From Dicyema japonicum (Eukaryota; Animalia; Dicyemida), in assembly GCA_011109175.1 (NCBI GenBank), contig RDEW01000058.1, positions 212,978-276,977 on the forward strand: 64,000 nt of DNA, written 5' to 3'. Below, piece by piece: positions 2,490-58,870 of this stretch (position 1 is its first letter; the number at the start of each line of letters is the position of its first letter). Both the position numbers and the translations under genes were made by a program. The notes beneath the pieces were generated by a model. The model made no database searches and was not told where the DNA came from. It saw nothing but the letters and a program-made list of their open reading frames with translations.

Positions 2490-2645
2490 ATGTCTAGTCC
2501 AGCTCTGAATGGAAGATATGTTCGAGATCTCCTTGCTTATCCTAGGCCATCAGGACTATCGTGAAAGTGGATCCAATGACGCCAACAGAGCAAGGAAGAT
2601 GAATTTTCAACCAATTAGCCACACAAGACGAAACGCGGCCCGAAA
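2490..2645 (-). repeat. Diverged copy of the non-coding dispersed repeat (family of 54865-55180)
   Basis: Reverse complement gccgcg...gtggctaattggttgaaa...ggcgtcattggatccactttcacg aligns to the 5' half of the family. Confidence 0.55.
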
Positions 2646-2899
2646 AATTGAATTAAACAATAAATTTATAAATTTAATAAAACTAAGCAGATTTATTAAA
2701 ATAAATAGATAAAAATAATCAACAAGTTATACGTCTAACTTACTATTTTAATATTAATCAAACAATAAGTATTTATTTTTATTAAATAAATAAAAATAAG
2801 TAAAAGTAATTATTTTATAATACACGTTTAACTCAATCTTCTCTTCTTGGGGCTAATCCCTATTGCTTTTATAGGCATGTTACGTCGCTGTATTTCCCA

Positions 2900-3120
2900 C
2901 ATTCAGAGACTACCCTAGGTTGACATTCCATCAACAGGCATCGGTACTTCATGCCTCCCCTCAGCTTGTATACTCTCCAAAGTCTTCCGTAACACTAACA
3001 TCTGTATGTAAGCTTTGTCCCTTTCCTCACCTTGAAAGCATCCAGGTAGCCTTTGAAGAATCTGGAGACAATTTCATCCCAAGTGATGACCAGAAGGATT
3101 AATTTCACCTTTGCGTGAGG
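2900..3120 (-). mobile_element. R4/Dong-like (RLE-type) LINE 3' end, diverged
   Basis: Translates as KVKLILLVITWDEIVSRFFKGYLDAFKV..AYIQMLVLRKTLESI, homologous to copies at 47255, 53275 and 58270. Confidence 0.55.
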
Positions 3121-3174
3121 ATAATCTCAAGTTCGTTAACTTTATGAGCTAATCCTTATTATTATAGGTTCTTC

Positions 3175-3312
3175 CGCGTGGTTAATTGGATGAACGTCTT
3201 ACTTTTTATGCTGATTTCGGATAGACTTTGTTTTTGTGGAAAAGGAAACTGGATACACTTAATCTAGTTTTTTACTTTAACTTTTTTCTCGGTGAACCCG
3301 GGGTTAATAAAT
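3175..3312 (+). repeat. Internally deleted copy of the non-coding dispersed repeat
   Basis: cgcgtggttaattgg is joined directly to the ...gaaactggatacacttaat...ctcggtg..ggggttaataaat 3' end seen at 55117-55180. Confidence 0.7.
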
Positions 3313-3349
3313 TAAAATTAATTTAATTATTATAAGCAACAACATAGAA

Positions 3350-4600
3350 TCATATTTAGTGCCAAACTCCGCCGACTACTATGTCTTCACCGTTCCCTAG
3401 TAATCTGTTTACTGGTCTCAAATCTCCACTAAGGACTTAAGGAAGCGTTATACGTAGACGCCCTATGACTTTTTCCACGTTTCAAAGAATTTGTTTGCTG
3501 GCGTATCTCATTTCATTCTTAGAATTTAACCAAACAGTTTCCACCTCATGATCAGAGTGTTCAGGGGTCCAGAGGAGCATCTTTTGTTACACGCATTGGC
3601 CAGTTTAATCCCAAGAGAGATAAAAGTTGCTTCTTATGAAAGGAGTTGAGCCTTTGTCTTTTGGTTTTCGAAATTATCCATGTTCCAGAGTTATACGTAA
3701 GGATCGGTTTCACGAAATCCTCATACAATCTGACTCGGAGTGATGGGCAGACTGGACGCCTTTGGATCCATCCTTTCAAAATGTTCTTACTACAGTTTTC
3801 GGTACTGCGTGGTTCTAATTGAGACCATTTAGCTAGGCGGTCTGCTGCTACCTCCAGGAGATGTCGAAGTGCATCTTTATTACTTGAGACAAAGTCAACA
3901 TCAACGGGGTAAACAATTTCCATAATATTGTCGCTGTAATACTTCCGGAGATCTCGTAGACCATATTCAATGTACGCAGCTAACAATACCAGAAGAGGGA
4001 GTCTCCTAGAGGTGTGCCTGCTGTTGTCACGATTTTCCAATAAGCACTCGCAACACCGTGTTTGATAAGAGTATCCGTATTAAGGTGACCGAGTCCGGAT
4101 CCAGGAAGGTTTCCAGGACTTCAATGAGTTTTCCTCGACGGACAGTGTCCAAAGCTTTGGTGAGATTAATTCCTGCGGGAAGCGGTATGGCTGAGGCAAT
4201 GAATTGGGATTGCAGTTGTCCACGGAAACGCTTACTCCGTAATGTCAGCAGCCGCTCTTCCCCGATATTGTTAATAAATAATATTTTATTGTTAAATAAA
4301 TCAAAATTTATTTAACCAACATAAATTTATTTTTTTATTTAACACTGCCATCCATCCAAAGTGGACCTCGCCGACATTATCGACGTTGGATTGCCTCTCA
4401 CGATTGCAACAAAATCAACTGGAGAAGCCACCGGGTCTCACGTGCGTCGTGGCTTTTTAATGTAACTAGGCGTCCAAATTTCTGTAGGAAGCGAAGCGAT
4501 TTTCCACTTATTCCTCCAGTTGTCTCGACCACAATTGGAAAAACGCGAATCGGTCGCGATGCGTTTATTGTTAAATAAAATGTTAAGCATAAAAAATAAA
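3350..4600 (-). pseudogene. Degenerate RTE-type LINE (APE end, large deletion, RT C-terminal half)
   Basis: TKALDTVRRGKLIEVL (RT DxSKAFD region) and LRVRLYEDFVKPILTYNSGTW, homologous to 27749-27973; AT-rich island at 4269-4334 sits at the deletion junction. Confidence 0.8.
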
Positions 4601-17524: not shown

Positions 17525-17932
17525 TTCAGTACGTATGCAAAACGCGAAAGCGTGGCCTATCGATCCTTTTGCTTTTAAAAGCTTTAAGCTAAAGGTGACA
17601 GAAAAGTTACCACAGGGATAATTGGCTTGTGCGCCCAAGCGTACATAGCGACGGCGCTTTTTGATCCTTCGATGTTGGCTCTTCCTATCATTGCGAAGCA
17701 TAAATCGCAAAGTGTAGGATTGTTCACCCACTAACAGGGAACGTGAGCTGAGTTTAGACCATCGTGAGATAGGTTAGTTTTACCCTACTGATTCGGTGTC
17801 GTTGCAACAGTAATTCTGCAAATTACGTGAGGAACTGCAGAGTCAGACATTTGGTTCATGCACTTGACTGAAAAGTCAGTGGTGCGAAGCTATCGTCTAA
17901 AGATAATAACTGAACGCCTCTAAGTTAGAATC
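17525..17932 (+). rRNA. Orphan 28S rRNA fragment (domains V-VI), probably continuing to about 18240
   Basis: cgcgaaagcgtggcctatcgatcc, gacagaaaagttaccacagggataa, tttgatccttcgatgttggctcttcctatcatt, ggattgttcacccactaacagggaacgtgagctgagtttagacc and ctgaacgcctctaagttagaatc. Confidence 0.93.
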
Positions 17933-18270
17933 TTGACTGGAAGCAACGATATTGTGCAGTGCTCTAATATAGCAAGAATATGCTTTTATGCTGCTGTTAC
18001 CTTGGTGTCGAAAGGTGTCCTAAAAGTAGGCATTATCACCCAGGTGAATTGCATTGAGACTGAGTACTGTGCTAAATCACATGTAGACGACATTTATTGG
18101 CATGAGAACTGTACGTATGAAAGCTGCTTTGGTGGCGATCTACTGAGGTCCATCTCTTTGCCAAAGATTTGTCCGCTTGTCGGACGACATTTAATGAAGA
18201 TTGGGATACTCGGGCCATGGTATACGGTGATAATTTGAGTATATAGCTATTTTCCTGTATTGTCAGAAAG

Positions 18271-25749: not shown

Positions 25750-25850
25750 TTGCATGGCGCTATGTGATGCTATCCACCTTACTGATGAGACCCCCAATGC
25801 CTGGCTAGCATCAAGAGGATCCAATTATTCTTCCTGGGGGACAATGTCGT
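25750..25850 (+). repeat. Diverged copy of the repeat-family core
   Basis: tggcgctatgtgat..tccacc...atgcctggctagcatcaagaggatc aligns to 54951-55014. Confidence 0.45.
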
Positions 25851-25959
25851 TACCTGGAGACAAGTTCTAGAATGCTGGAACGAGTCAGGATCAAGGACTT
25901 TGTTAGTTTGGTTACCCTTGGTCTTTGGAATTATTTTAATTTAACATGAACAAATGCGT

Positions 25960-30701: not shown

Positions 30702-32177
30702 GGTACTGGGACATTTGGCCGACAGACGTTTAGCCGACAATTCAATTAAGCATAAATGATCAATAAATACACTATGTATTTTAATAACGGTAAAAAAATG
30801 GAATTTTCACAAACCAGTCGTGGAAAGAGAAAACTTCTGCATGATGGCTATGCGTACATTGTAGATAGACAGAGACAATGTCATACATTGGAGATGTGAG
30901 CTGAAAGGAAAATCAAAGCAGAGTAAGAACTGTAATGGAGAACTTAATGGAACTATGACACCACACGAACATCCACCAAATGCAGGACGTTTACATGCGC
31001 TGAAAACCGTCAATACGATAAAGAAGAGAGCGAGAGATTCTGAAGAAATTACATCCACGATTATCCAAAATTGTTTAAGCACATACCCTATTGATGCTGC
31101 TTGTGCGCTACCCAAAAAAACCCTTGCACGCATTGTTGGACGACAGTGTACAGATCACATACAAGACGGTAATGTTCTTACTGATGAACTTAAAAGTACT
31201 CTCAGAGGAGATGACTTTGTGCCACACGATAGTAATGGATTGCTTATATTAATAACAGCAAGAAACCTTGATCTTATGTCTATGAAAGAACATTGGTTAT
31301 GTGATGGTACTTTTGATTCAGCTCCATTAGGTTTTCAGTTTACACATGTTACATTATGTAAAACATGTACGGTTCCATTAATGTACGCTATTGCTCGAGA
31401 AAAATCTCAACAAATGTATGAACAAATATTTTCTACACTAAAAGAGAAAAGGCCACAATTGAATCCACTATCATTTACCATAGATTATGAGCGAGCAGCG
31501 ATCAATGCTATCAACAGAATTTTTCCAAATGCAAATGTGTATGGCTGTTACTTTGGGCAGTGTTTATGGCGAAAAATACAAAATCTAGGACTGCAGGCAT
31601 GGTACAATGACCCAGCAAATGCAAACTTAATTAAAAGTATTCAGCACTGGCATTTGTTCCTGTACCTCAAGTCATTGAGAGTTTCCATGCGCTCCTTGAA
31701 ACTATAGATGACGAGATGATGACGTGTTGGGAGATTTCTGACCTATTTTGAGACAACATGGATCGGAGACTTGTAACGTGGAAGGAGAAAAAGACCATTG
31801 TTTAGTTTGAAAATGTGAAATGTACACGACATACAAGCAGAAGTCCTCCCAAGAACTAAGAATTCACTTAAAGATGGCACAGATCTTTTTCACAAAGAGT
31901 GTCTATAAAACATCCAACGTTTGTCGGCTTGTTGCAAAAATACGAAAAGAACAGTCGGAGTGGGAGCTCACAGTAGAACAAGTGATGGCCGGAATAACAA
32001 TAAGACAGGTAAAGAAGAAGCAAAAAAATAAAAAGTATTATTGAAAAATATGATGAATAAACTTCAGTAGAATTTTTGACTGCGCTTTCTCATAACCTTT
32101 AAGTAAATGTTTTTATTTTGAATTTTATCTCTGAATTTTAAAACCAGAATTTCCTGTCGGCCAAATGTCTGGACACC
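30702..32177 (+). mobile_element. Mutator-like element (FLYWCH + MULE transposase), frameshifted
   Basis: 24-bp TIR with a perfect 16-bp core gacatttggccgacag; 9-bp TSD agatctgtg/ggatctggg; LLHDGYAY, WLCDGTFD, TIDYERAAINA and GCYFGQCLWRKIQ. Confidence 0.92.
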
Positions 32178-43462: not shown

Positions 43463-43723
43463 ACTTCCACTTATTCCTCACAGAAACAGAGTCCATCCGG
43501 AATCAGCATAAAAGGTAAGACATCCATTACATGCAGTTATGGAAACCCCTCCAGTAGAATGGGGAAGAGCAAATGATCCTTTTTCGTGCCGGCCTGGTAC
43601 TGAGCGTCACCTAGACAGGTAGATCACATAACGCCACTCTAATAGGAAGAGAGAGGAGGAACAGACAAGCAAGCAGAAAACTTCAACCAATTAACCACGC
43701 AGCATCACATGGCGCCACGCGGC
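43463..43723 (-). repeat. Non-coding dispersed repeat (SINE-like), near-full copy
   Basis: High identity, inverted, to 54865-55118. Confidence 0.9.
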
Positions 43724-44510
43724 AAATACGCGGGATTTAGTATTTAAATTTTAATATTCATAAAGAATGTAATATTATTTATAAATAAAACTAAATTAGA
43801 TCAAAGAACTCGTCCCGTAATCATTACAAACAATTTCCATTATACGTATCACTTCTCTTGTCCCGGTCCGCCTCCAAATTCTGCATGGAACCAAATACAA
43901 CTGTTGGATCTCATGGAACGTCCGCTCTTGTCTTGAAGTTTTTGTTAGCCACCGATTTCTTTCACTTGAATGGACCTGGGGTAAATATTTAAATTAAATA
44001 AACAATTTCGATTACTGCCACACACGACACACATCTTACTGATCTCCGGCAGCTTCTGCTTTCGGTAATTACAAATCGGTTAGCCGCATGTTTGAGTGAC
44101 TATGGGTAAACTTGAAGGTCACTTGAAAGGACTATGGATAAATAAATGAGATCGAAGAACTCGGTAAAGTAATCCTAGCACGCCTCAGTGGTAATAGGAT
44201 GTTGGCGGGGACCTTGTATTACTATTTTCATAGGGGACGGGTATTTTACAATTCACTAATGATTGTAGATATAAATTATTCAGAAAATATTATTATTGTC
44301 TCCAGGCTTAATCATTGGTAAACCTAGCACAAACAGAATAAATAACTAATCCAAGGAAGGAACACAAGGGAGAACGCCTCCTTGTGACGACCAAATCTAT
44401 CCTCCAAGCTTCTGCTTCCAAGAAAGGTTAAGAAGTATGTCTCCCCACTTCCAATTTTATCACAAGTCCACTTGATCCCTGAATTTATAAAATAATCGAA
44501 TATGCAAGTG

Positions 44511-45322: not shown

Positions 45323-46647
45323 TTAATAATTTTCTCTCCATTTCTTTACGTTAGTTAACCCAAACATACTATATTTGGATAAATCCTTAGTTGGTCGTGT
45401 ATTATCCCAGTTATTGGATAGGGACCCCTATTACAAGCTCCTCTATAGTCATCCATATCAAGACTATCTACATACACTCCTGCCATTTGTTTCTCGTAAA
45501 TATACCCAACCTGAAATAAATAACCATTAAACTTTTTTCGCAAGACTATATTCATTTTCGATTCCAATGTAAAGAGTTCTTCCATGAGCAAACGTGCTGT
45601 GTAATTCAGGGTCAGATTGTTCGCTGTATGGAGTCTTACAATACTACGACATAAATATGACCGAACTGAGTAATATGGAGTCTTAAAATACATTGGAGTC
45701 TTCGGATAATCGTAAACGACCCCATTATACGGATACTCGGAGGAACACTTTTTCATTAAGGCATATGTTAGAATAGCCATGACAAGCTTTTTGGGTTGAA
45801 TGTCGTTATTAATCAGGAAAGTCATGGTGTCGTTCTAAAATTAGGTGATATTTACTATGGAGTTATCAGGAAGATCTTTAAAAGTATAGCGGAAATGGGT
45901 GATTAACCGAACCGTTATATTTGCTATATTTATAATTTTCAACGAGGACGTAGTCAGAGAGTCTATTGGTGACATTAAGGTATTTTACCTGTTAACTTGT
46001 GGATGTTCGTATTTTTGATAAATAGAAATTGTCGTGAATAACAAATATTTGTTGTATTCTCGCAGAGCGGCATTTAGATTCTAAATTTTGTTGAATTTAA
46101 ACTTTAAGTAACAATTGTGGAGTTGAGGGGTTTTGCCAGTAAATATTATATCCATCAAAATTATATTTTGCAAGAAACATGAGAACATTGCTAGCGAAGT
46201 CTCTTGCCTTTTCTGAACTATTGGATGCTCTTTCAAAAGCAGGATCGTAGTCGTCTCCATCGAATAAAGTTCCGGCTGATGAAATAACCTTTAGATCTGG
46301 GTTTATTGACTTTAGCGCTTGTATTCGATTGTAATTATTAAATCCGCCTGAGATAGAATTTTAATCATTACCGGGTAAATCATGAATTGGAGAGGCCGTA
46401 GGATAAGCGAGAATCGATCTTAGCAGCATAGTAATAATATATGTGTGCACAGATATGGATACATAAACACACGCTTAAGATTTGATAACTATTGGCGCCG
46501 TCGTTTTTAAAAACACACATCAGAACTTTACCTATAATTCAATTTTAATAAATTTATACCTTTTAAATAGTTACGACTTGCCACTAGCCCCTATTTTGAT
46601 TATAAACGATTAACTACATTTAATAAAATCAGAAGAAGGATTAACAT
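45323..46647 (-). CDS. Secreted GH18 chitinase-like protein, copy 1 (non-catalytic; frameshifts in the 5' part, possible pseudogene)
   Basis: Signal peptide MLILLLILLN-GLVAS; LCTHI; FDGYNIYWQNP; MAGVYVDSLDMDDYRGAC..GPYPI; 21-28-nt introns. Confidence 0.8.
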
Positions 46648-47189
46648 TTTTGTTCTTCTATTACTTATTTTATTTCTGATTTGGTTTTGCCACCTAAAAA
46701 TTATAAAATATTTTGAAAAAATTATTATATTATTTAAATTTTATCTAAATAATTATTTTGTTATTTACTTTTAGCGAATATTATAACTTATTTTTAATAA
46801 GCGGAGTACATGACATTATTATCCAACAAAGATTGCTTATATGATAAATTTACATAGAACGTGCTTAAACTACGATGAGATTTAAACACCACTTACTCTT
46901 ACTATATAACTAGCCTAAAGTCCATTGATCATTAGTAATTATAAAATACTTAATAATTCAATATTCATGTAATAGTTAAGTTATCCAATAACGTAGAAAG
47001 TGACTAATCGGATTCACAAGACGTCAAATTGAATAATCACATTTTCACATATTATATATTATATTACAATAACTGTTAATTTTTTAAATTTATTACAAAT
47101 TAATGTTTTGGAAAATATAATTAATTCATTTTTGTTCGAGTAATACAATAATTCAGCGATAGTAGATTAGTTCCGCATGAGCGGGACCA
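46620..47189. repeat. ~570-bp segmental duplicate of the first exon + upstream region (other copy 50594-51163)
   Basis: Near-identical from ataaaatcagaaga to agttccgcatgagcgggacca. Confidence 0.92.
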
Positions 47190-47254
47190 AATGTATCAAT
47201 TTGTATTGATTAGAGAAATATGGAACGATTGACTCACATAAAACAAAGTTGCAT

Positions 47255-47720
47255 CAACATTGTGGTACATGATAACCGGACATTGTGGTACACGATAAGG
47301 AGTCTGGACAAGTCCTTATAATTGAGGTCTCAAGACCGTTTGCAGACTGTGGAGTGGAGAAAAATGGAAATATGATTTGCTTGCGAACGAGATGGGCAGA
47401 TGCTTGGTGCAGGTCGTCGTTATTCAATAGTAATGACGTGGGAAGGAATTGCAACAAAATACTAAAAGGTTTATCTGAAACAGTTAGGGGTAGATAGGAA
47501 GCTCTATGCTTATCTACAGTCCATAAAGTGGACCCTAGAGAGCCTGACACTGGAGTATAGGAGGCAGAGCCCGGAGATGCCAAATGGGAAGAGGGTTCAA
47601 TTGGACAAGGCGCTCTCAGAGTTGTTTCATCAACCGAATTAAACTTGCCTTTGAAGCTGGCTAACAGACAAGCGAGAAAAATTGTTGATTATTAAATATT
47701 AACTTTTTTATTGTTGGTTA
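47255..47720 (+). mobile_element. R4/Dong-like LINE RLE and 3' UTR
   Basis: PDIVVHDKESGQVLIIEV...KYDLLANEMG...PIVMTWEGIATK...TLESL. Confidence 0.8.
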
Positions 47721-48555: not shown

Positions 48556-49070
48556 TTGGAAGCTGACTCCAATCTAATTACTTTATTCAAAGAAAAACAA
48601 AAACGGTTCCAATATTCACAACGGGACATATCACGAATGATGAAAGCACTGGGATACAGGAGCTCCGAAACTGGGCAACTCTCACTCAAAGACAACACTG
48701 TTGGGAGATTCGAAACTGGGCAACTCTCACTCAAAGACAACACTGTTGGGAGATCCGAAACTGGGCAACTTTCATTAAAAAAAATGCGAGACTATAAGGA
48801 TACTTTTTGTCATCACGTTGTGCTACATTATAGACAACATGGTTCCTTTCCCGACGGTCGCAATAACACAAATTTTCAACCTCTCAATTAACTAGAATAA
48901 GATTCCGTCAACATGGAATAAATCTCTGATGTACCATATCCTGAAGAAAAACAATCTAAACTACAGTTACAGAAGAAAAATGGTGGAAAAACATTAGTTG
49001 TTGGAAATTCAGTTATTCTGCGGATGGTTTCCGATTTGAAAACATCGACGTGAAAAAACTCACTGTAGTA
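48556..49070 (+). pseudogene. POU-specific-domain-like sequence plus a possible decayed homeodomain
   Basis: FKEKQKRFQYSQRDIS...TVGRFETGQLSLKKMRDYK parallels the POU-S consensus FKQRRIxLGxTQxDV...TISRFEALQLSxKNMxKLK; downstream frame has KKN..R..L...WF..HRREK with stops. Confidence 0.45.
48664..48780. repeat. 45-bp tandem repeat, ~2.6 copies, in frame (15 aa)
   Basis: Units begin at 48664, 48709 and 48754 (SETGQLSLKDNTVGR). Confidence 0.95.
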
Positions 49071-50593: not shown

Positions 50594-51163
50594 AAATAAA
50601 ATCAGAAGAGGGATTAACATTTTATGTTCTTCTATTACTTATTTTTTTCTGATTTGGTTTGCCACCTAAAAATTATAAAATATTTTGAAAAATTATTATA
50701 TTATTTAAATTTAATTTAAAAAATTATTTTGTTATTTACTTTTAGCGAATATTATAATTTATTTTTTAATAAGCGGAGTACATGACATTATTATCCAACG
50801 AAGATTTCTTATATGATAAAGTTACATAAAAACGTGCTTAAACTACGATGAGATTTAAACACCACTTACTCTTACTATATAAACTAGCCTAAAGTCCATT
50901 GATCATAGTAATTATAAATACTTAATAATTTAATATTCATGTAATGGTTAAGTTATCCAATAACGTAGAAAGTGACTAATCGGATTCACAAGACGTCAAA
51001 TTGAATAATCACATTTTCACATGTGATATATTATATTACAAAACTGTTAATTTTTTTTTAATTTATTACAAATTAATGTTTTGGAAAATATAATTAATTC
51101 ATTTTGTTCGAGTAATACAATAATTCCAGCGATAGTACATGTAGTTCCGCATGAGCGGGACCA
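50594..51163. repeat. Segmental duplicate of 46620-47189; orphan first exon of the chitinase-like gene
   Basis: ATG (minus strand, 50620) MLIPLLIL then runs into antisense LINE sequence. Confidence 0.9.
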
Positions 51164-51671
51164 CAGTTTATTTTGAGAATAAAAAAGTCGTGATGATTAA
51201 TTGCTGGAAAGGAAACCACTACTTATTGTCGAACAGCACCTTCGTAAGAGTCGTGATACTTATAGCTCTGCATTTGGAGGATATACGTGTTATTTTAAGA
51301 GAAAAAAATTATTCCAAGTACTCGTCGGTAGGGCCCAATGAGTGTTCTCAATTTCTTGCTAGTGAATCCTCATAGACAATCCAGATCCGTAGTGAGGTAT
51401 CACTAATGAAAGTAAAGCCAAAAAATATATTTAAAAAAATAATGTGGGTAATTCTTATGTTTAAATGACGTCAGTGTTATTTTTGAAAATAAATCAAAAA
51501 TAATGTAAATCCAGAAATGATTTGCTCATGAAAATAGTTTCGCAAAATTCAAAAAACAAAAAGTTTTTATTTTAGCAAATTAGTTTAAATCGATTTAAGT
51601 ATTCCGAATAATCCGAAGTTTCCTCCAAAAGTGTTAGATCCAAAGTAATCTAAAGACTGTCATCAACAATA

Positions 51672-53043
51672 TTATTGGCGACATTTTGTTGAGATGACTA
51701 GACCTAGGAGTGACCTCTGTCCAATCCTTTGCTTTAGTAAAATCAAATATACAATCTGTGGATAAATTCCTAGCTGATCGTGCAACATTCCAGTTATGGG
51801 GTAAGGACCCATGTTACAATCTCCTCTAAAGTCGTCCATATCAAGACTTTCCACGTACACTCCAGCCAAACCTTTCTCGTAAATATATCCAGCCTGAAGT
51901 TAACAACCATCAAACTTTTTGCGCAAGACTATACTCATTCTCGATGCCAATATAATAACTTCCACCAAAAGCGAATGTACTTTGCAATTCAGGGTCAGAC
52001 TGTTCACTGTATGGAGTCTTACAATACTAAGACATGAATATGACCGAACTGAGTAATATGGAGTCTTAAAATACATAGGAGCCTTTGGATAATCGTAAAC
52101 GACCCCATTATACGGATACTCGGAGGAACACTTTTTCATTAAGGCATATGTTAGAATAGCCATGACAAGCTTTTTGGGTTGAATGTCGTTATTAATCAGG
52201 AAAGTCATGGTGTCGTTCTAAAATTAGGTGATATTTACTATGGAGTTATCAGGAAGATCTTTAAAGTATAGCGGAAATGGGTGATTAACTGAACCGTTAT
52301 ATTTGCTATATTTATAATTTTCAACGAGGACGTAGTCAGAAAGTCTATTGGTGACACTAAGGTATTTTACCTGTTAACTTGTGGATGTTCGTATTTTTGA
52401 TAAATAGAAATTGTCGTGAATAACAAATATTTGTTGTATCCCCTAAGAGCAGCATTTAAATTCTAAATATTATAAAGTTGAACTTTGAGTAACAACGTGT
52501 GTCTTTGTGGAGTTGAGGGATTTTGCCAGTAAATATTATATCCATCGAAATCATATTTTGCGAGAAACATGAGAACATTCCTGGCGAAATCTCTTGCTTT
52601 TTGATTACTATCCGTTGCTTTTTCAAAAGCAGGGTCATATTCTTCACCGTCAAACAAATTCACTGATGTTAAAATGACTTTTAAATCTGGGTTTACTAAT
52701 CTTAGTCTTTGTATTTGATTGTAATTATCAAAGCCACCTAAAATACAAGTTAAAATTATTACCATGCAAATCATGGGTTGATGAGGCATTAAGATGGAGT
52801 GATTGTAAGTCAATTTTGGCACTGTAGTATAGTATATGTGTGCACAAATACGGATACATAAACTTTTGCTCCGTGCTTGAATAACTGTTAGCGCCATCAT
52901 TTTTAAAAACGCACATGAGAACTTTATCTAAAAATTGAGTTAATTCCATATATACTGGTTGAGTAATCATAACTTGACACTAACCTCTATTTTAATTATA
53001 AACAATTTATTACATTTAATAAAAACAGAAGAGAGATTAACAT
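51672..53043 (-). CDS. Secreted GH18 chitinase-like protein, copy 2 (apparently intact, non-catalytic)
   Basis: Spliced frame MLISLLFLLN-RLVSS...KVLMCVF...YLCTHILY...FDGYNIYWQNP...GLAGVYVESLDMDDFRGDC..GPYPI; eight or more 21-28-nt GT-AG introns. Confidence 0.88.
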
Positions 53044-53274
53044 TATTGGTTTTTAATCATTTTAAAAATTACTTATTTTATTTCGATAATGGTTAGCCAT
53101 GCATTAAGATTTAAAAATTGAAAAATAATTTAATTAAAACATTTTATCTAAAATTTCAATTTTAGTACTTTTTTTAATTTATTAAATATTCTAGTAATTT
53201 TAATATTTTTACTTTATTTATCTATTAGCAATATTTTATGGACAGAGGCTTGGTTCCAAGGTACTCATTATTTC

Positions 53275-53530
53275 TAGTAATGACGTGGGAAGGAATTGCA
53301 ACAAAGTACCAAAAAGGTTATCTGAAGCAGTTAGGGTAGACCAGAAGCTCCAGGCCTATCTATACTCCACTGTATTAAAGCGGACCCTAGAGAGCCTGAC
53401 ATTGGAGTGTAGGAAGCAGAGCCTGGAGATGCCATATTGGCAAAGGGTTCAATTAGACAAGGTGCTCTCGGAGTTGTTTCAGCAATGTTGATTATTAAAT
53501 ATTAACTTTTTATTGTTGGTTAAATAAAAA
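53275..53530 (+). mobile_element. R4/Dong-like LINE 3' end
   Basis: Close match to 47430-47720; QAYLYSTVLKRTLESL. Confidence 0.8.
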
Positions 53531-54864
53531 GGGTTATATTAGCAATATTTTATAATTCCTCACTCAATATCAGTAATGAAATCTTATAGGATTTAATCCA
53601 CGTCATACATTACTAATCTTTCATATTTATCTGTTATTTTTAGTCCTCATCATACTTTTTAATTTTTCATATATTATCCATCCAATTTAGACATACAATT
53701 CGATAACGAATGGACAGTTTATTTTTCTTATCTTAAATTCTATCGGTATTTAGAAAAAAAATCTTAAATGAGAATTGAACCTAAAGAATATACAAATTTA
53801 GGTGTTTTTCCTAGCATTCATTATTCACTCTAAATGAGGGGATTTGCTAAGTATGAAATCAGTTATATTTTGTAAATTGAGCTTACCCCACCTGTGACAT
53901 GATCCCCATAACTATTGCTACGACTATGTCTTTAATAAAAATGTTATGTTATGTTTACCCTACCTGTCTTAGACAAATCTGTGAGACGAAATCCATCCTC
54001 CAATAGTCCATTAGAAGCTTACGCTTAAGAAGAGAAGTGAAAATGTATGTTCGCCTTCTTCCACTTTACTTGTACGTCTTACCGTCGCGACATCATTTCA
54101 TTCTCAGTCAGAAGAGTTTTAATAATGGAAATCTCCACCAGTGAATTTGGCGAGGAGATGGTAGGAAGATCCTTTTAGACAACTGTGTCGTTCCAGAAAG
54201 ACTCGTTGCCTCACGGTTGGTATCTGGTGGTACGCTTAAAAGTCCATCTTTCGGATTCTAAGAACGATTCTCAGATCCGATGTTATCAAAGGTTCAGCCA
54301 AAAAGACCAATATTTTTTTTATATTTTCTAGTATTCGTTGAACAGTAAAAGTTCATAAGACATGTATTAGTGTGTTGGAGATCATCTTCAGTTCCCTTAG
54401 GATGACAGATAAAGTGTAGAAAATTTATGGCAAAAACTACTTGATGGAATTAATGAGTTTTACTTACATTTATTTAAAACTGATAAGTTTTTACTTTGAT
54501 TAACGTAAACGATATTCGGGAACAGAAATACACACTTATAGAAAAATTTATATAATCAGCAACTTTGCGGCAGTCACGATTTATATAGAAGACGCAGTTT
54601 ATTTTTTGTTAAAGAACAGTTATGTTAACTTATCTTTGAAAAAGAACATTTCTAACTTCTTTTTGTTTGCCAGTGAGTCTCTGTAGCGAATCCGGTTTCG
54701 CAGTGGAATATCACTACTTACGTCGTCATCTTTGGATATCTTGAGAAAGAAATCAGCGTCAATTATGTCGACGGGGATAAAATCTAAATAAATTATAAAC
54801 TAAATATTAATCGACCAATTAATTTGTAAGTCATTATAATAATAGAATAATATTCAATTTAAGA

Positions 54865-55215
54865 GCCGCGTGGCGCCATGTGGTGCTTCGTGGTTAATTG
54901 GTTTAATTTTTCTGCTTGCTTGTCTGTTCCTCCTCTCTCTTCCTAATAGAGTGGCGTCATGTGATCCACCTGTCTAGGTGACGCCCAGTGCCAGGCCGGC
55001 ACGAAAAAGGATCATTTGCTCTCCCCCACTCCACTGGAGGGGTTTCCACAACTGCATGTAATGGACGTCTTACCCTTTATGTTGATTCCGGATGGACTCT
55101 GTTTCTGTAGAAGTGGAAACTGGATACACTTAATTAGTTGGTTACTTTAACTTCTTTCTCGGTGTATTCGGGGTTAATAAATAATAATAATAATAATAAA
55201 ATAATAATAATAATT
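54865..55215 (+). repeat. Non-coding dispersed repeat (SINE-like) with (AAT)n tail and a candidate HDV-like ribozyme core
   Basis: Copies at 43463, 3175, 2490 and 25750; tail ataataataat; pairings listed in findings. Confidence 0.85.
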
Positions 55216-55229
55216 GAATAATATAATAA

Positions 55230-55600
55230 TATTCCAATCCTAATGAATATTAATGCTTTCTTTTATATCTTATTATGAAAGCGATAACAACGATAAAGAC
55301 AAATCCGCAAATTCCACATATCGTCTTTAATTTCGTATTCATACGAGTTGTTCATTTGAATCTAAGATTTCTTTCAAAATCACATCCAGGAGCTAAATAT
55401 TGGTTTTATAAGTTACCATTTCCAGTAAATATTATGTTATTATCTGTTTTAAATAGCTGCATTTTATATATTACATTTTTATAGTTCCATAATTAGGAAT
55501 AGCCACTACTATTTCACTGCAGTTATAATGACCGTTAGTCGAAATTTTCGAACCTGGAGTAAACATGATGGAATATAAATAGAACGTGGAATCAATTTGT
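55230..55600 (-). pseudogene. Paralog of the single-pass membrane gene at 59.3-60.2 kb (partial)
   Basis: 55410-55550 aligns with 59615-59760; C-terminal TICGICGFVFIVVIAFIIRYKKK; stop codon in the ectodomain frame. Confidence 0.55.
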
Positions 55601-57360: not shown

Positions 57361-58269
57361 GATGGCTTTTTTTTAATTAGTTTACCTTGTAATTTTTGGC
57401 TTATTTATAAAAATAAAGTAACGTCAATATAAATGAGCTTTTTTGATTCACATGTTGGTGTCAGTTTGTTGTGTTTGTCATACAAAAACTAGTAAAGAAC
57501 AAAGAAATTCAGTGCTGGATTTTGTAAGATGCGCCTATGGAGAAATTGACGAGTTCTGATGTCGATAATTTGTATTTATGACGATTCCAAGTTGGAGAGT
57601 ATATCCCAATCTTGAAAATAAGGATTTTTAGATCGAACGGAGTATGAATGAGATTCCATGTTTTTTGTGTTGACTTAGAAAGATTGATAGCTGAATAGTT
57701 TACGAACTTGATAATACAATTAGAAGACAACATTCACTATATTTCTCAACTCTTTGATACCTCACTGCGAACGGCGTCACTCGATAAACAAGAAGCATCG
57801 TAGATGTGTGGAACTTTAGTCATAATGTATAAAAATAAACTATCTTGATTTTTCTGGCATTCATGATGCTGTGCCATTAAATAATTTCTGACTAGTAGAA
57901 AATATTTTTAATATCTTGGCAAATGTCTTTAGTGGCTTGTGGATTATCTGTCGGATAGTTGATATATGCCAAGTCAAGAGATTTGGACGTCAGGGTACAC
58001 TCATAGGCTATGACGTCTCCAAAACCCATAACCTCGTTCAGTTGATCCCCTTGGGTTCTTGAGAAGATCTCCTGCTCAATTATGTGGACGGGGATCATAA
58101 CCTAATAAATTATAACTAAAATTTAATCAACCAATGAATTTGTTAATTTATCATTAGGGCAACGAAAGTCAATAAAGTCAACTTAAGTGTTCGTTTAATT
58201 TGATTGTAAAAATGATAAAGAAAATTTATTTAAAAAAAGTGTGAGCTCTCGCCCATATCACATTTCCTA

Positions 58270-58870
58270 GCTCTGTCTCCTATACTCCAATGTCAGGCTT
58301 TCTAGGGTCGCTTTTAAACAGAGGATGTAGATAGACCTGGAGCTTTTGATATACTAACTATTTTAGATAATCCTTGTTATACTTTGTTGCAATTCCTTCC
58401 CACGTCAATACGATTGGAATAACGAGGACCTTGCAACCAAGCATTCGTTTACCAGCCTTCATAGTTTTTTTCTTCAACTAACAGTCTGCAAAAGGGCATG
58501 AGGTGAAATGTAACTTCTAGATATGGACTTGATTAAACTCCCTATTGTGAACCAGAATGTCCGGTTTATTGTATTTGACTAGCACTGAAATTCGGATAAC
58601 ACTGTTTACATTGATTTGGCCCCTCGTATTCTCAATTACAGATTGTACTTTATGAGTGCACAACTTTCTGGGGTGACGAATACCATACTTATTACATGGT
58701 ATAAGATGAAGATTTTACTACTTTTTTATACTCCCACACATAGTGTGGTAGAGAATGGATCCGACAGATTGGCTAAATGATCATCCGACATGCTCCTTGG
58801 TTATAATGGGACATTTATTTGTTGTTCGACCACAAAAATATTGCCGTCTTGCAAATACGATCGAGGTGAT
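58270..58870 (-). mobile_element. R4/Dong-like LINE CCHC + RLE region
   Basis: HLA...CNKYGIR...KYNKPDILVH...PIVLTWEGIATK. Confidence 0.8.

Follow-up and report, generated by a model that had tools for sequence, protein, structure and literature searches.

A likely conserved pseudoknot with HDV-like helix order inside SINEs of Dicyema japonicum

A 64,000-nt stretch of the Dicyema japonicum genome (GenBank assembly GCA_011109175.1, contig RDEW01000058.1, positions 212,978 to 276,977; hereafter the window) carries a full and young copy of a ~320-bp non-coding retroposon at 54865-55224. A 62-nt module in its transcript is predicted to form a pseudoknot with the helix order of HDV-like ribozymes, and the same module recurs in several diverged SINE families of this animal. 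We think it somewhat probable that the module is a non-cleaving structural RNA that has been kept in the SINE source genes and is possibly the descendant of a delta ribozyme.

The retroposon belongs to a real, abundant and recently active non-coding SINE-like family, which we call family A. In the genome from which the window comes (67.5 Mb in 377 contigs), 2005 first-look candidate copies were detected, and the 40 copies that were scored were 95-98% identical. The 5' start was constant in these 40 copies (query position 5-7; window base 54865). Aligned copy ends revealed TSDs of ~10-14 bp, 5' junctions with variable extra nucleotides and tails of (AAT)n or (AATA)n, and the first 18 nt of the fold had 470 exact occurrences genome-wide. 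No reading frame is open in the element. The sequence-only reading had described a SINE-like repeat family with an (AAT)n tail and no ORF, and the copy search, the aligned ends and the frame check all bear this out. The element thus has the usual SINE characteristics of small size, lack of coding capacity, high copy number, TSDs and a simple-repeat or A-rich 3' tail. A head taken from a Pol III gene (tRNA, 5S, 7SL or snRNA, with A and B boxes) was the SINE feature that we did not find: ARAGORN detected no tRNA in the head and Rfam gave no match for it. From its sequence, the head appears to be a 30-nt hairpin that is not recognisably derived from tRNA, 5S or 7SL. Families B and B2 retain this hairpin via wobble or compensating changes. 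The head was also considered as the start of an HDV-like fold, but a P2 strand could not be accommodated between its P1 and P3, so this was rejected and the head is taken as a plain hairpin. The coordinates of the element and of related copies are given in Table 1.

Table 1. Features of the SINE copy at 54865-55224 and of related copies, in window coordinates
Feature	Position	Strand	Remarks
Left TSD, probable (AATAATATTCAAT)	54846-54858	+	Compared with 55225-55238
Extra 6 nt at 5' junction, TTAAGA	54859-54864	+	Between left TSD and head
Head hairpin, GCCGCG-U-GGCGCC AUGU GGUGCU-U-CGUGGU	54865-54894	+	Constant 5' end of the family; hairpin present in the MFE fold
Pyrimidine-rich linker, head to fold	54895-54952	+	Upstream of the predicted cut, yet in all copies
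Conserved 62-nt module, HDV-like helix order	54953-55014	+	From pairing and family comparison
P1	GGCGTC(A) 54953-59 with (T)GACGCC 54979-85	+	6-7 bp
J1/2, UG		+	Between P1 5' strand and P2 5' strand; read from the sequence
P2	TGATCC 54962-67 with GGATCA 55009-14	+	6 bp
P3 hairpin, ACCU GUCU AGGU	54968-54979	+	ACC/GGT core; 4-5 bp with a loop of 3-4 nt
Invariant CA after P1	54986-54987	+	
P4 hairpin, GUGCC AGGCC GGCAC	54988-55002	+	TGCC/GGCA core; 5 bp with closing pair
C55002, proposed catalytic C	55002	+	CpG cytosine; best read as 3' partner of G54988, the fifth P4 pair
J4/2, GAAAAA	55003-55008	+	Family A, assuming a 5-bp P4
SINE body and 3' region	55015-55175	+	Conserved CCCC...GGGG hairpin at ~55024-55042; 3' part common to the short variant at 3190-3318
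(AAT/AATA)n tail	55176-55224	+	Followed by probable right TSD, 55225-55238
Second family-A copy	43480-43723	-	First 244 nt, 93% identical; fold at 43574-43635
Family-B SINE copy	25750-25940	+	Module 25761-25823; P1 5' strand lost by deletion
Short module-less derivative	3170-3320	+	Head fused directly to 3' region
Old diverged copy	2540-2645	-	Retains head, linker and only ~20 nt from the start of the module; nhmmer match to model positions 1-20 (E = 0.0097)

The TSD of the copy at 54865-55224 is only probable because its context is AT-rich; other copies have clear TSDs and variable extra 5' nucleotides. At many SINE 5' junctions (L016:1460-1502, L006:1470-1501 and window 43723-43740 on the minus strand) a short extra sequence lies between the TSD and the first base. 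These extras are recurrent leaders (GATTT, ATAAG, ATCGA or AAAATTA) or partly duplicate the beginning of the element itself (CCGCGT, an A/T run and GCCGCGTGG), which suggests that reverse transcriptase jumps templates or adds non-templated nucleotides as synthesis ends.

As RNA, the module at 54953-55014 reads GGCGUCA UG UGAUCC ACCUGUCUAGGU GACGCC CA GUGCC AGGCC GGCAC GAAAAA GGAUCA. All four helices that had been proposed for it, P1 to P4, were recovered when the sequence was read again (Table 1). They follow one another in the order P1-P2-P3-P3'-P1'-P4-P4'-P2', which is that of HDV-like ribozymes, with 3-5 bp in P3 and 4-5 bp in P4. Residue T54979 can be used by P1 or by P3 and not by both, i.e. 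P1 has 7 bp only if this residue is taken from P3, and otherwise 6 bp. The nested part of the fold (P1, the inner hairpin and P4) is the MFE fold, at -23.6 kcal/mol (z = -2.4). We also applied a relaxed topological descriptor consisting of a 6-bp P1, a 6-bp P2, a 3-bp P3, a P4 of 4-6 bp and a C after P4. It matched the module site, and in dinucleotide-shuffled windows it matched at a rate of 0.05 per window (1 match in 20 shuffles). As matches in shuffled windows were rare, yet the real window contained an unrelated GU-rich match at 4482-4544 (minus strand), the helix arrangement alone is suggestive and not decisive. In family A, window positions 54959-54964 in J1/2-P2 read AUG UGA, a start codon followed at once by a stop. 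In family B, the A of an AUG at L026:3156-3158 is the 5' base of the P4 closing pair, and a short frame opens there.

The published descriptor for HDV-like ribozymes calls for a G1-Y pair, a 7-bp P1, a P1.1 of two C-G pairs, an L3 containing U...CG and a J4/2 of CRRA (PMC6326823). J4/2 opens with the catalytic C, and a C-to-U change at this position inactivates all tested drz ribozymes (PMC10879173). The module has the G1-pyrimidine pair (G54953-C54985); the P1 of family B has 6 bp. P1.1 would require two C-G pairs between C20 and C21 of L3 and two G residues directly after P1. This element is absent because an invariant CA follows P1 in all 38 sequences compared; L3 is also without CC. Possible 2-bp substitutes for P1.1 draw on loop positions that differ between families A and B. 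In the canonical L3, a 3-bp P3 is capped by 7-8 nt with conserved U19...C23 G24, which include a reverse-wobble U.G. The family-A loop instead reads UGUCUA, and its stem extends to 4-5 bp, leaving 3-4 nt. With a 5-bp P4, J4/2 has 5-7 nt rather than a 4-nt CRRA with a free C: GAAAAA in A, CAAGA in B, UCAAAA in B2, CAUAAA in C and CCAAAAA in D. An Rfam search of the window at the gathering threshold gave no ribozyme or small-RNA match, and the HDV, CPEB3 and drz models gave no match at E<=10 in a family-A copy or in five loci with other families (B, A2 and C). The Rfam result is weak on its own because these models are known to miss divergent members. The assignment to HDV-like ribozymes was therefore correct for the helix order and the G1-C pair, and failed for P1.1, for the U..CG of L3, for the 4-nt CRRA J4/2 and for an Rfam match. 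Judged on these features, the module seems to be HDV-like in topology at most, outside the membership of the class.

The sequence-only reading had placed the catalytic residue at C55002, in a CGAA following P4. This motif can indeed be read after TGCC/GGCA, i.e. after a 4-bp P4, but comparison of the families puts the C inside P4: family B has A-U at the homologous pair and many copies have G.U, so that C55002 most plausibly belongs to that helix. Of 30 young copies, 18 had T at 55002; this T is linked to changes elsewhere among the diagnostic positions and hence marks a subfamily. Other CpG sites had changed to TG in only 0-2 of the 30. The two subfamilies are of equal age, diverging from their own consensus by 2.3% (T) and 2.5% (C). 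As the T subfamily is larger and equally young, a source gene with U at 55002 has been at least equally successful in spreading. In families B, C and D, J4/2 opens with C after a 5-bp P4; if any version cuts, it would be these rather than family A.

Nor do the copies in the genome support the proposal that the element's 5' end is generated by self-cleavage of an HDV-like ribozyme. The first residue of the fold is position 89 of the element, i.e. 88 nt inside, and none of 470 copies starts at the predicted cut. Any reverse transcription of cleaved RNA would be expected to leave some copies with G1 as their first base. For family A we screened for copies in which the pentamer upstream of G1 differed from AGAGT at all five positions, a filter that ~24% of truncated copies would pass. 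None of the 470 copies had such an unrelated pentamer, indicating that less than roughly 3% of copies are truncated at G1. In family B, 3 of 116 exact copies differed at all three upstream positions. All three read AGA, which is the end of another family's linker and not random flank, so that no family-B copy (0/116) had a random flank at G1. Every module-bearing copy in a sample of about 350 kb retained both linker and head, and the breaks of 5'-truncated copies in an unbiased sample fell at query positions 251-283, with none at 89. From these data we conclude that the genome's own copies bear no sign of cutting at the fold and that the template RNA is apparently uncut.

Conservation of the module was examined in about 350-360 kb of sequence, comprising the window, 29 flanks and a 200-kb sample. 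With nhmmer, 50 module instances were detected at E<1e-4 (55 at E<1) in ~360 kb. Besides young family A, the module is carried by the older A-like families A2 and A3, by family B (L026:3122 and window 25761), by the longer B2, and by C and D. These families have little or no BLAST similarity to family A outside the module, which is the best-conserved part between families. It is preceded in every case by a related head and pyrimidine-rich linker, and is never located at the 5' end in the ~360 kb. We parsed 38 distinct module sequences by means of sequence anchors, and 84-90% of the cells paired in each helix. In P1, all changes were single and compatible with wobble pairing. A-type families have U-A as the first pair of P2 and B-type families have G-C (28 vs 5 sequences), the fifth pair of P3 alternates across families between G.U or G-C and U.G, and the homologue of the P4 closing pair G54988/C55002 is G-C in 14, G.U in 16 and A-U in 6 of the 38 sequences. 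The consensus sequences of families A and B differ at 4 of 42 stem positions compared to 8 of 21 unpaired positions (Fisher p = 0.014). Two of the four stem differences constitute the U-A to G-C swap in P2, and a third converts G.U to A-U in P4; three of the four thus keep pairing. The P2 strands of family A, TGATCC and GGATCA, are a true inverted repeat and not a direct repeat.

Formal tests for covariation were carried out on a MAFFT alignment of 15 diverse copies. Pairing was specific to the register, with 76.8% of cells pairing compared to 33-43% when the partners were slid by 1-3 columns. The covariation score was not above that of shuffled controls (0.170 vs 0.151, a value reached by 49 of 500 shuffles), nor was the number of pairs changed on both sides (3 vs 3.3). 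RNAalifold did not recover P1, P3 or P4 from the same 15-copy alignment and returned a weak alternative hairpin in which GG-GUC pairs with GAUCC. P2 is understated in the covariation count because MAFFT placed the 3' strand of the family-B P2 one column out of register. Most of the aligned sequences are dead copies in decay, and it is two families plus one singleton that provide the strongest compensations. The doubly compensated P4 of family D was rejected as evidence of compensation, as this P4 variant occurs once in the genome. On the formal scores, covariation is weak. Taken together, the comparison of families makes a conserved pseudoknot likely.

Changes in the inverted copy at 43574-43635 had been read as compatible with G-U pairing. 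Three C>T changes do produce G.U pairs, as described, but a fourth change, G>A, breaks P4 (GTACC/GGCAC). Three compatible transitions in four is about the neutral-decay expectation. The diverged copy at about 2550-2590 (minus strand) had been credited with a CPEB3-like loop; because this copy is without the P1 3' strand, P4 and the C of J4/2, the likeness is a surface resemblance only. The junction that defines the short module-less derivative occurs only twice in the whole genome.

We also searched for a helper LINE. No LINE 5' or 3' end with similarity to the SINE was present in ~360 kb. An RT query of the genome gave 135 LINE matches, among them long open frames at G000:C311:419865-420758(+), C112:1375171-1376055(+), C313:197635-198528(-) and C18:31720-32571(-), and by coordinates no exact module lay within 5 kb upstream of any of the 135. 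The sole RT neighbour among the listed module matches is a family-A SINE located 0.5 kb from a decayed RT fragment at C24:1178016. A six-frame search with the peptide encoded by the B2 module and its downstream sequence gave 139 matches, all in open frames of <=163 aa, and no LINE ORF follows the module at locus L037. One LINE reverse-transcriptase family, found at L047:9069-9998 (G000:C112:329069-329998; RVT_1, E = 7.5e-29), is represented by many copies whose proteins are 97-99% identical, and its longest open frames reach ~920 aa. Other RT lineages, at 46-61% identity, contain frames of up to ~1190 aa. Because of the near-identical copies and long open frames, several LINE families look recently active.

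The explanation that we prefer can be set out as follows. Like target-primed retroposons driven by LINEs, the SINE would acquire TSDs and an A/T-rich repeat tail on insertion. In its transcript, 54953-55014 would fold into a compact pseudoknot in which P1 (6-7 bp) encloses the P3 hairpin (4-5 bp), the 5-bp P4 comes next, and the 6-bp P2 connects the P1 loop with the strand following P4. The template RNA would be copied uncut, retaining its 88 nt of head and linker. The module may descend from an HDV-like ribozyme, and its fold would have been kept for propagation of the RNA and not for catalysis. Candidate roles may include recognition by a helper LINE protein or RNP, RNA stability and ribosome association. 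Conservation of the module could also reflect repeated capture from LINE 5' ends.

Three other explanations were weighed against a non-cleaving structural module. That the module is an active, non-canonical HDV-like ribozyme cutting 5' of G54953, with C55002 as the general acid or, in B, C and D, the C that opens J4/2, strikes us as quite improbable. The HDV helix order, the G1-C closing pair (a G1-Y pair being allowed, PMC6326823), the CGAA after a 4-bp P4, a relaxed descriptor match that is rare in shuffles, and the first-position C of J4/2 after a 5-bp P4 in B, C and D (CAAGA, CAUAAA and CCAAAAA) are what such a ribozyme would have in its favour. Against these stand the lack of HDV, CPEB3 or drz matches at E<=10 in A, B, A2 and C, the missing P1.1 C-G pairs and L3 U..CG, a J4/2 of 5-7 nt instead of 4, and a P3 loop of just 3-4 nt if the covarying fourth and fifth pairs form. 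The U subfamily is larger and no older, though C-to-U kills the tested drz ribozymes (PMC10879173), and all copies retain the 88 nt upstream of the cut, with 0 of 470 starting there. A chance arrangement of complementary words in a single repeat copy is extremely unlikely: one unrelated match to the relaxed descriptor does occur in the real window (4482-4544, minus strand), but the arrangement recurs in hundreds of copies and several diverged families, and shuffles yield 0.05 matches per window.

It is possible, though we doubt it, that the module has no function at the RNA level. It would then be a hitch-hiking relic (e.g. a dead ribozyme from the 5' region of a helper LINE) or an element acting as DNA (e.g. 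part of an internal promoter), and its helices would persist through family kinship and GC-richness. This account fits shuffle controls that were not exceeded, an RNAalifold analysis that gave no consensus fold and a P1 with only wobble-compatible single changes. It fits less well with A/B differences that avoid stems (p = 0.014) and that keep pairing in three of four stem changes, with P2 strands in family A that form an inverted rather than a direct repeat, with the module being the best-conserved part between families, and with the failure of module-less derivatives to expand. Returning to the structural module, a bolder version is tentative at best: a descendant of the HDV fold without its canonical core may have become an obligatory, helix-selected, non-cleaving module of a SINE superfamily, and possibly of its helper LINEs too, i.e. 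a scaffold exapted for RNA recognition or translation. Alternatively, the same scaffold might have acquired a new active site.

Delta ribozymes are found at the 5' ends of non-LTR elements, including R2 and its SIDEs (PMC3414825), and in L1Tc/NARTc (Pr77-L1TcRz) and other trypanosomatid elements (PMC3185411, PMC3383444, PMC4035085). The Dicyema module shares with the R2 and L1Tc ribozymes the order and nesting of P1 to P4, the 5' G of P1, an A-rich J4/2, residence in retroposons and inheritance by short non-coding derivatives. Whereas those ribozymes start at or adjoining the first nucleotide and define the 5' end, the module lies 88 nt inside and is apparently copied uncut. It also differs from them in having no P1.1, no L3 U..CG, no 4-nt J4/2 with a free C and no Rfam model match, and in that a U variant at its proposed catalytic position spreads at least as well.

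The SINE superfamilies CORE-SINE, V-SINE and Deu-SINE contain conserved central domains. As in these superfamilies, a short central segment is kept across Dicyema SINE families that differ elsewhere. Here, however, the segment is a specific predicted pseudoknot with some compensatory changes, and the head is not recognisably tRNA, 5S or 7SL. If our preferred explanation is true, the module would represent a second, non-catalytic use of the HDV fold, in which a scaffold without the core lies internally, passes into new copies without being cut and is maintained in several SINE families. The function of SINE 'core domains' could then be studied on a definite example. If the RNA is unfolded or has no role, what we describe is just a well-characterised SINE family in a small animal genome.

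Twister variants occur in non-LTR elements of Schistosoma (PMC8501958), and the hammerhead occurs in the Sm-alpha SINE and in retrozymes (PMC7761336). The module resembles the Schistosoma twister and the Sm-alpha hammerhead in being a small RNA motif, structured or catalytic, that resides in short non-autonomous retroelements of a parasitic animal. Those motifs belong to other ribozyme classes, keep their cores and cleave in vitro, whereas the core of the module is not kept.

Several further features of the window were recorded. A ~650-bp orphan fragment at 17527-18170 (plus strand) corresponds to the 3' end of a eukaryotic 28S rRNA; the Rfam model is matched over positions 2825-3399 of 3401, and homology reaches ~90 nt further upstream. 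Since the surrounding sequence contains nothing else of an rDNA unit, the fragment may be a truncated rDNA pseudogene or a retro-copy. With its MULE transposase domain (PF10551, E = 5.5e-9), a 280-aa ORF at 30865-31704 (plus strand) is a putative remnant of a Mutator-like DNA transposon. Segments 45333-47633 and 50668-53485 form a diverged local duplication with 74-94% identity in blocks and spacings of ~3972, 5850 and 6385 bp, part of which is present again in inverted orientation at 58251-58416. A 45-bp sequence is repeated three times in tandem at 48659-48793.
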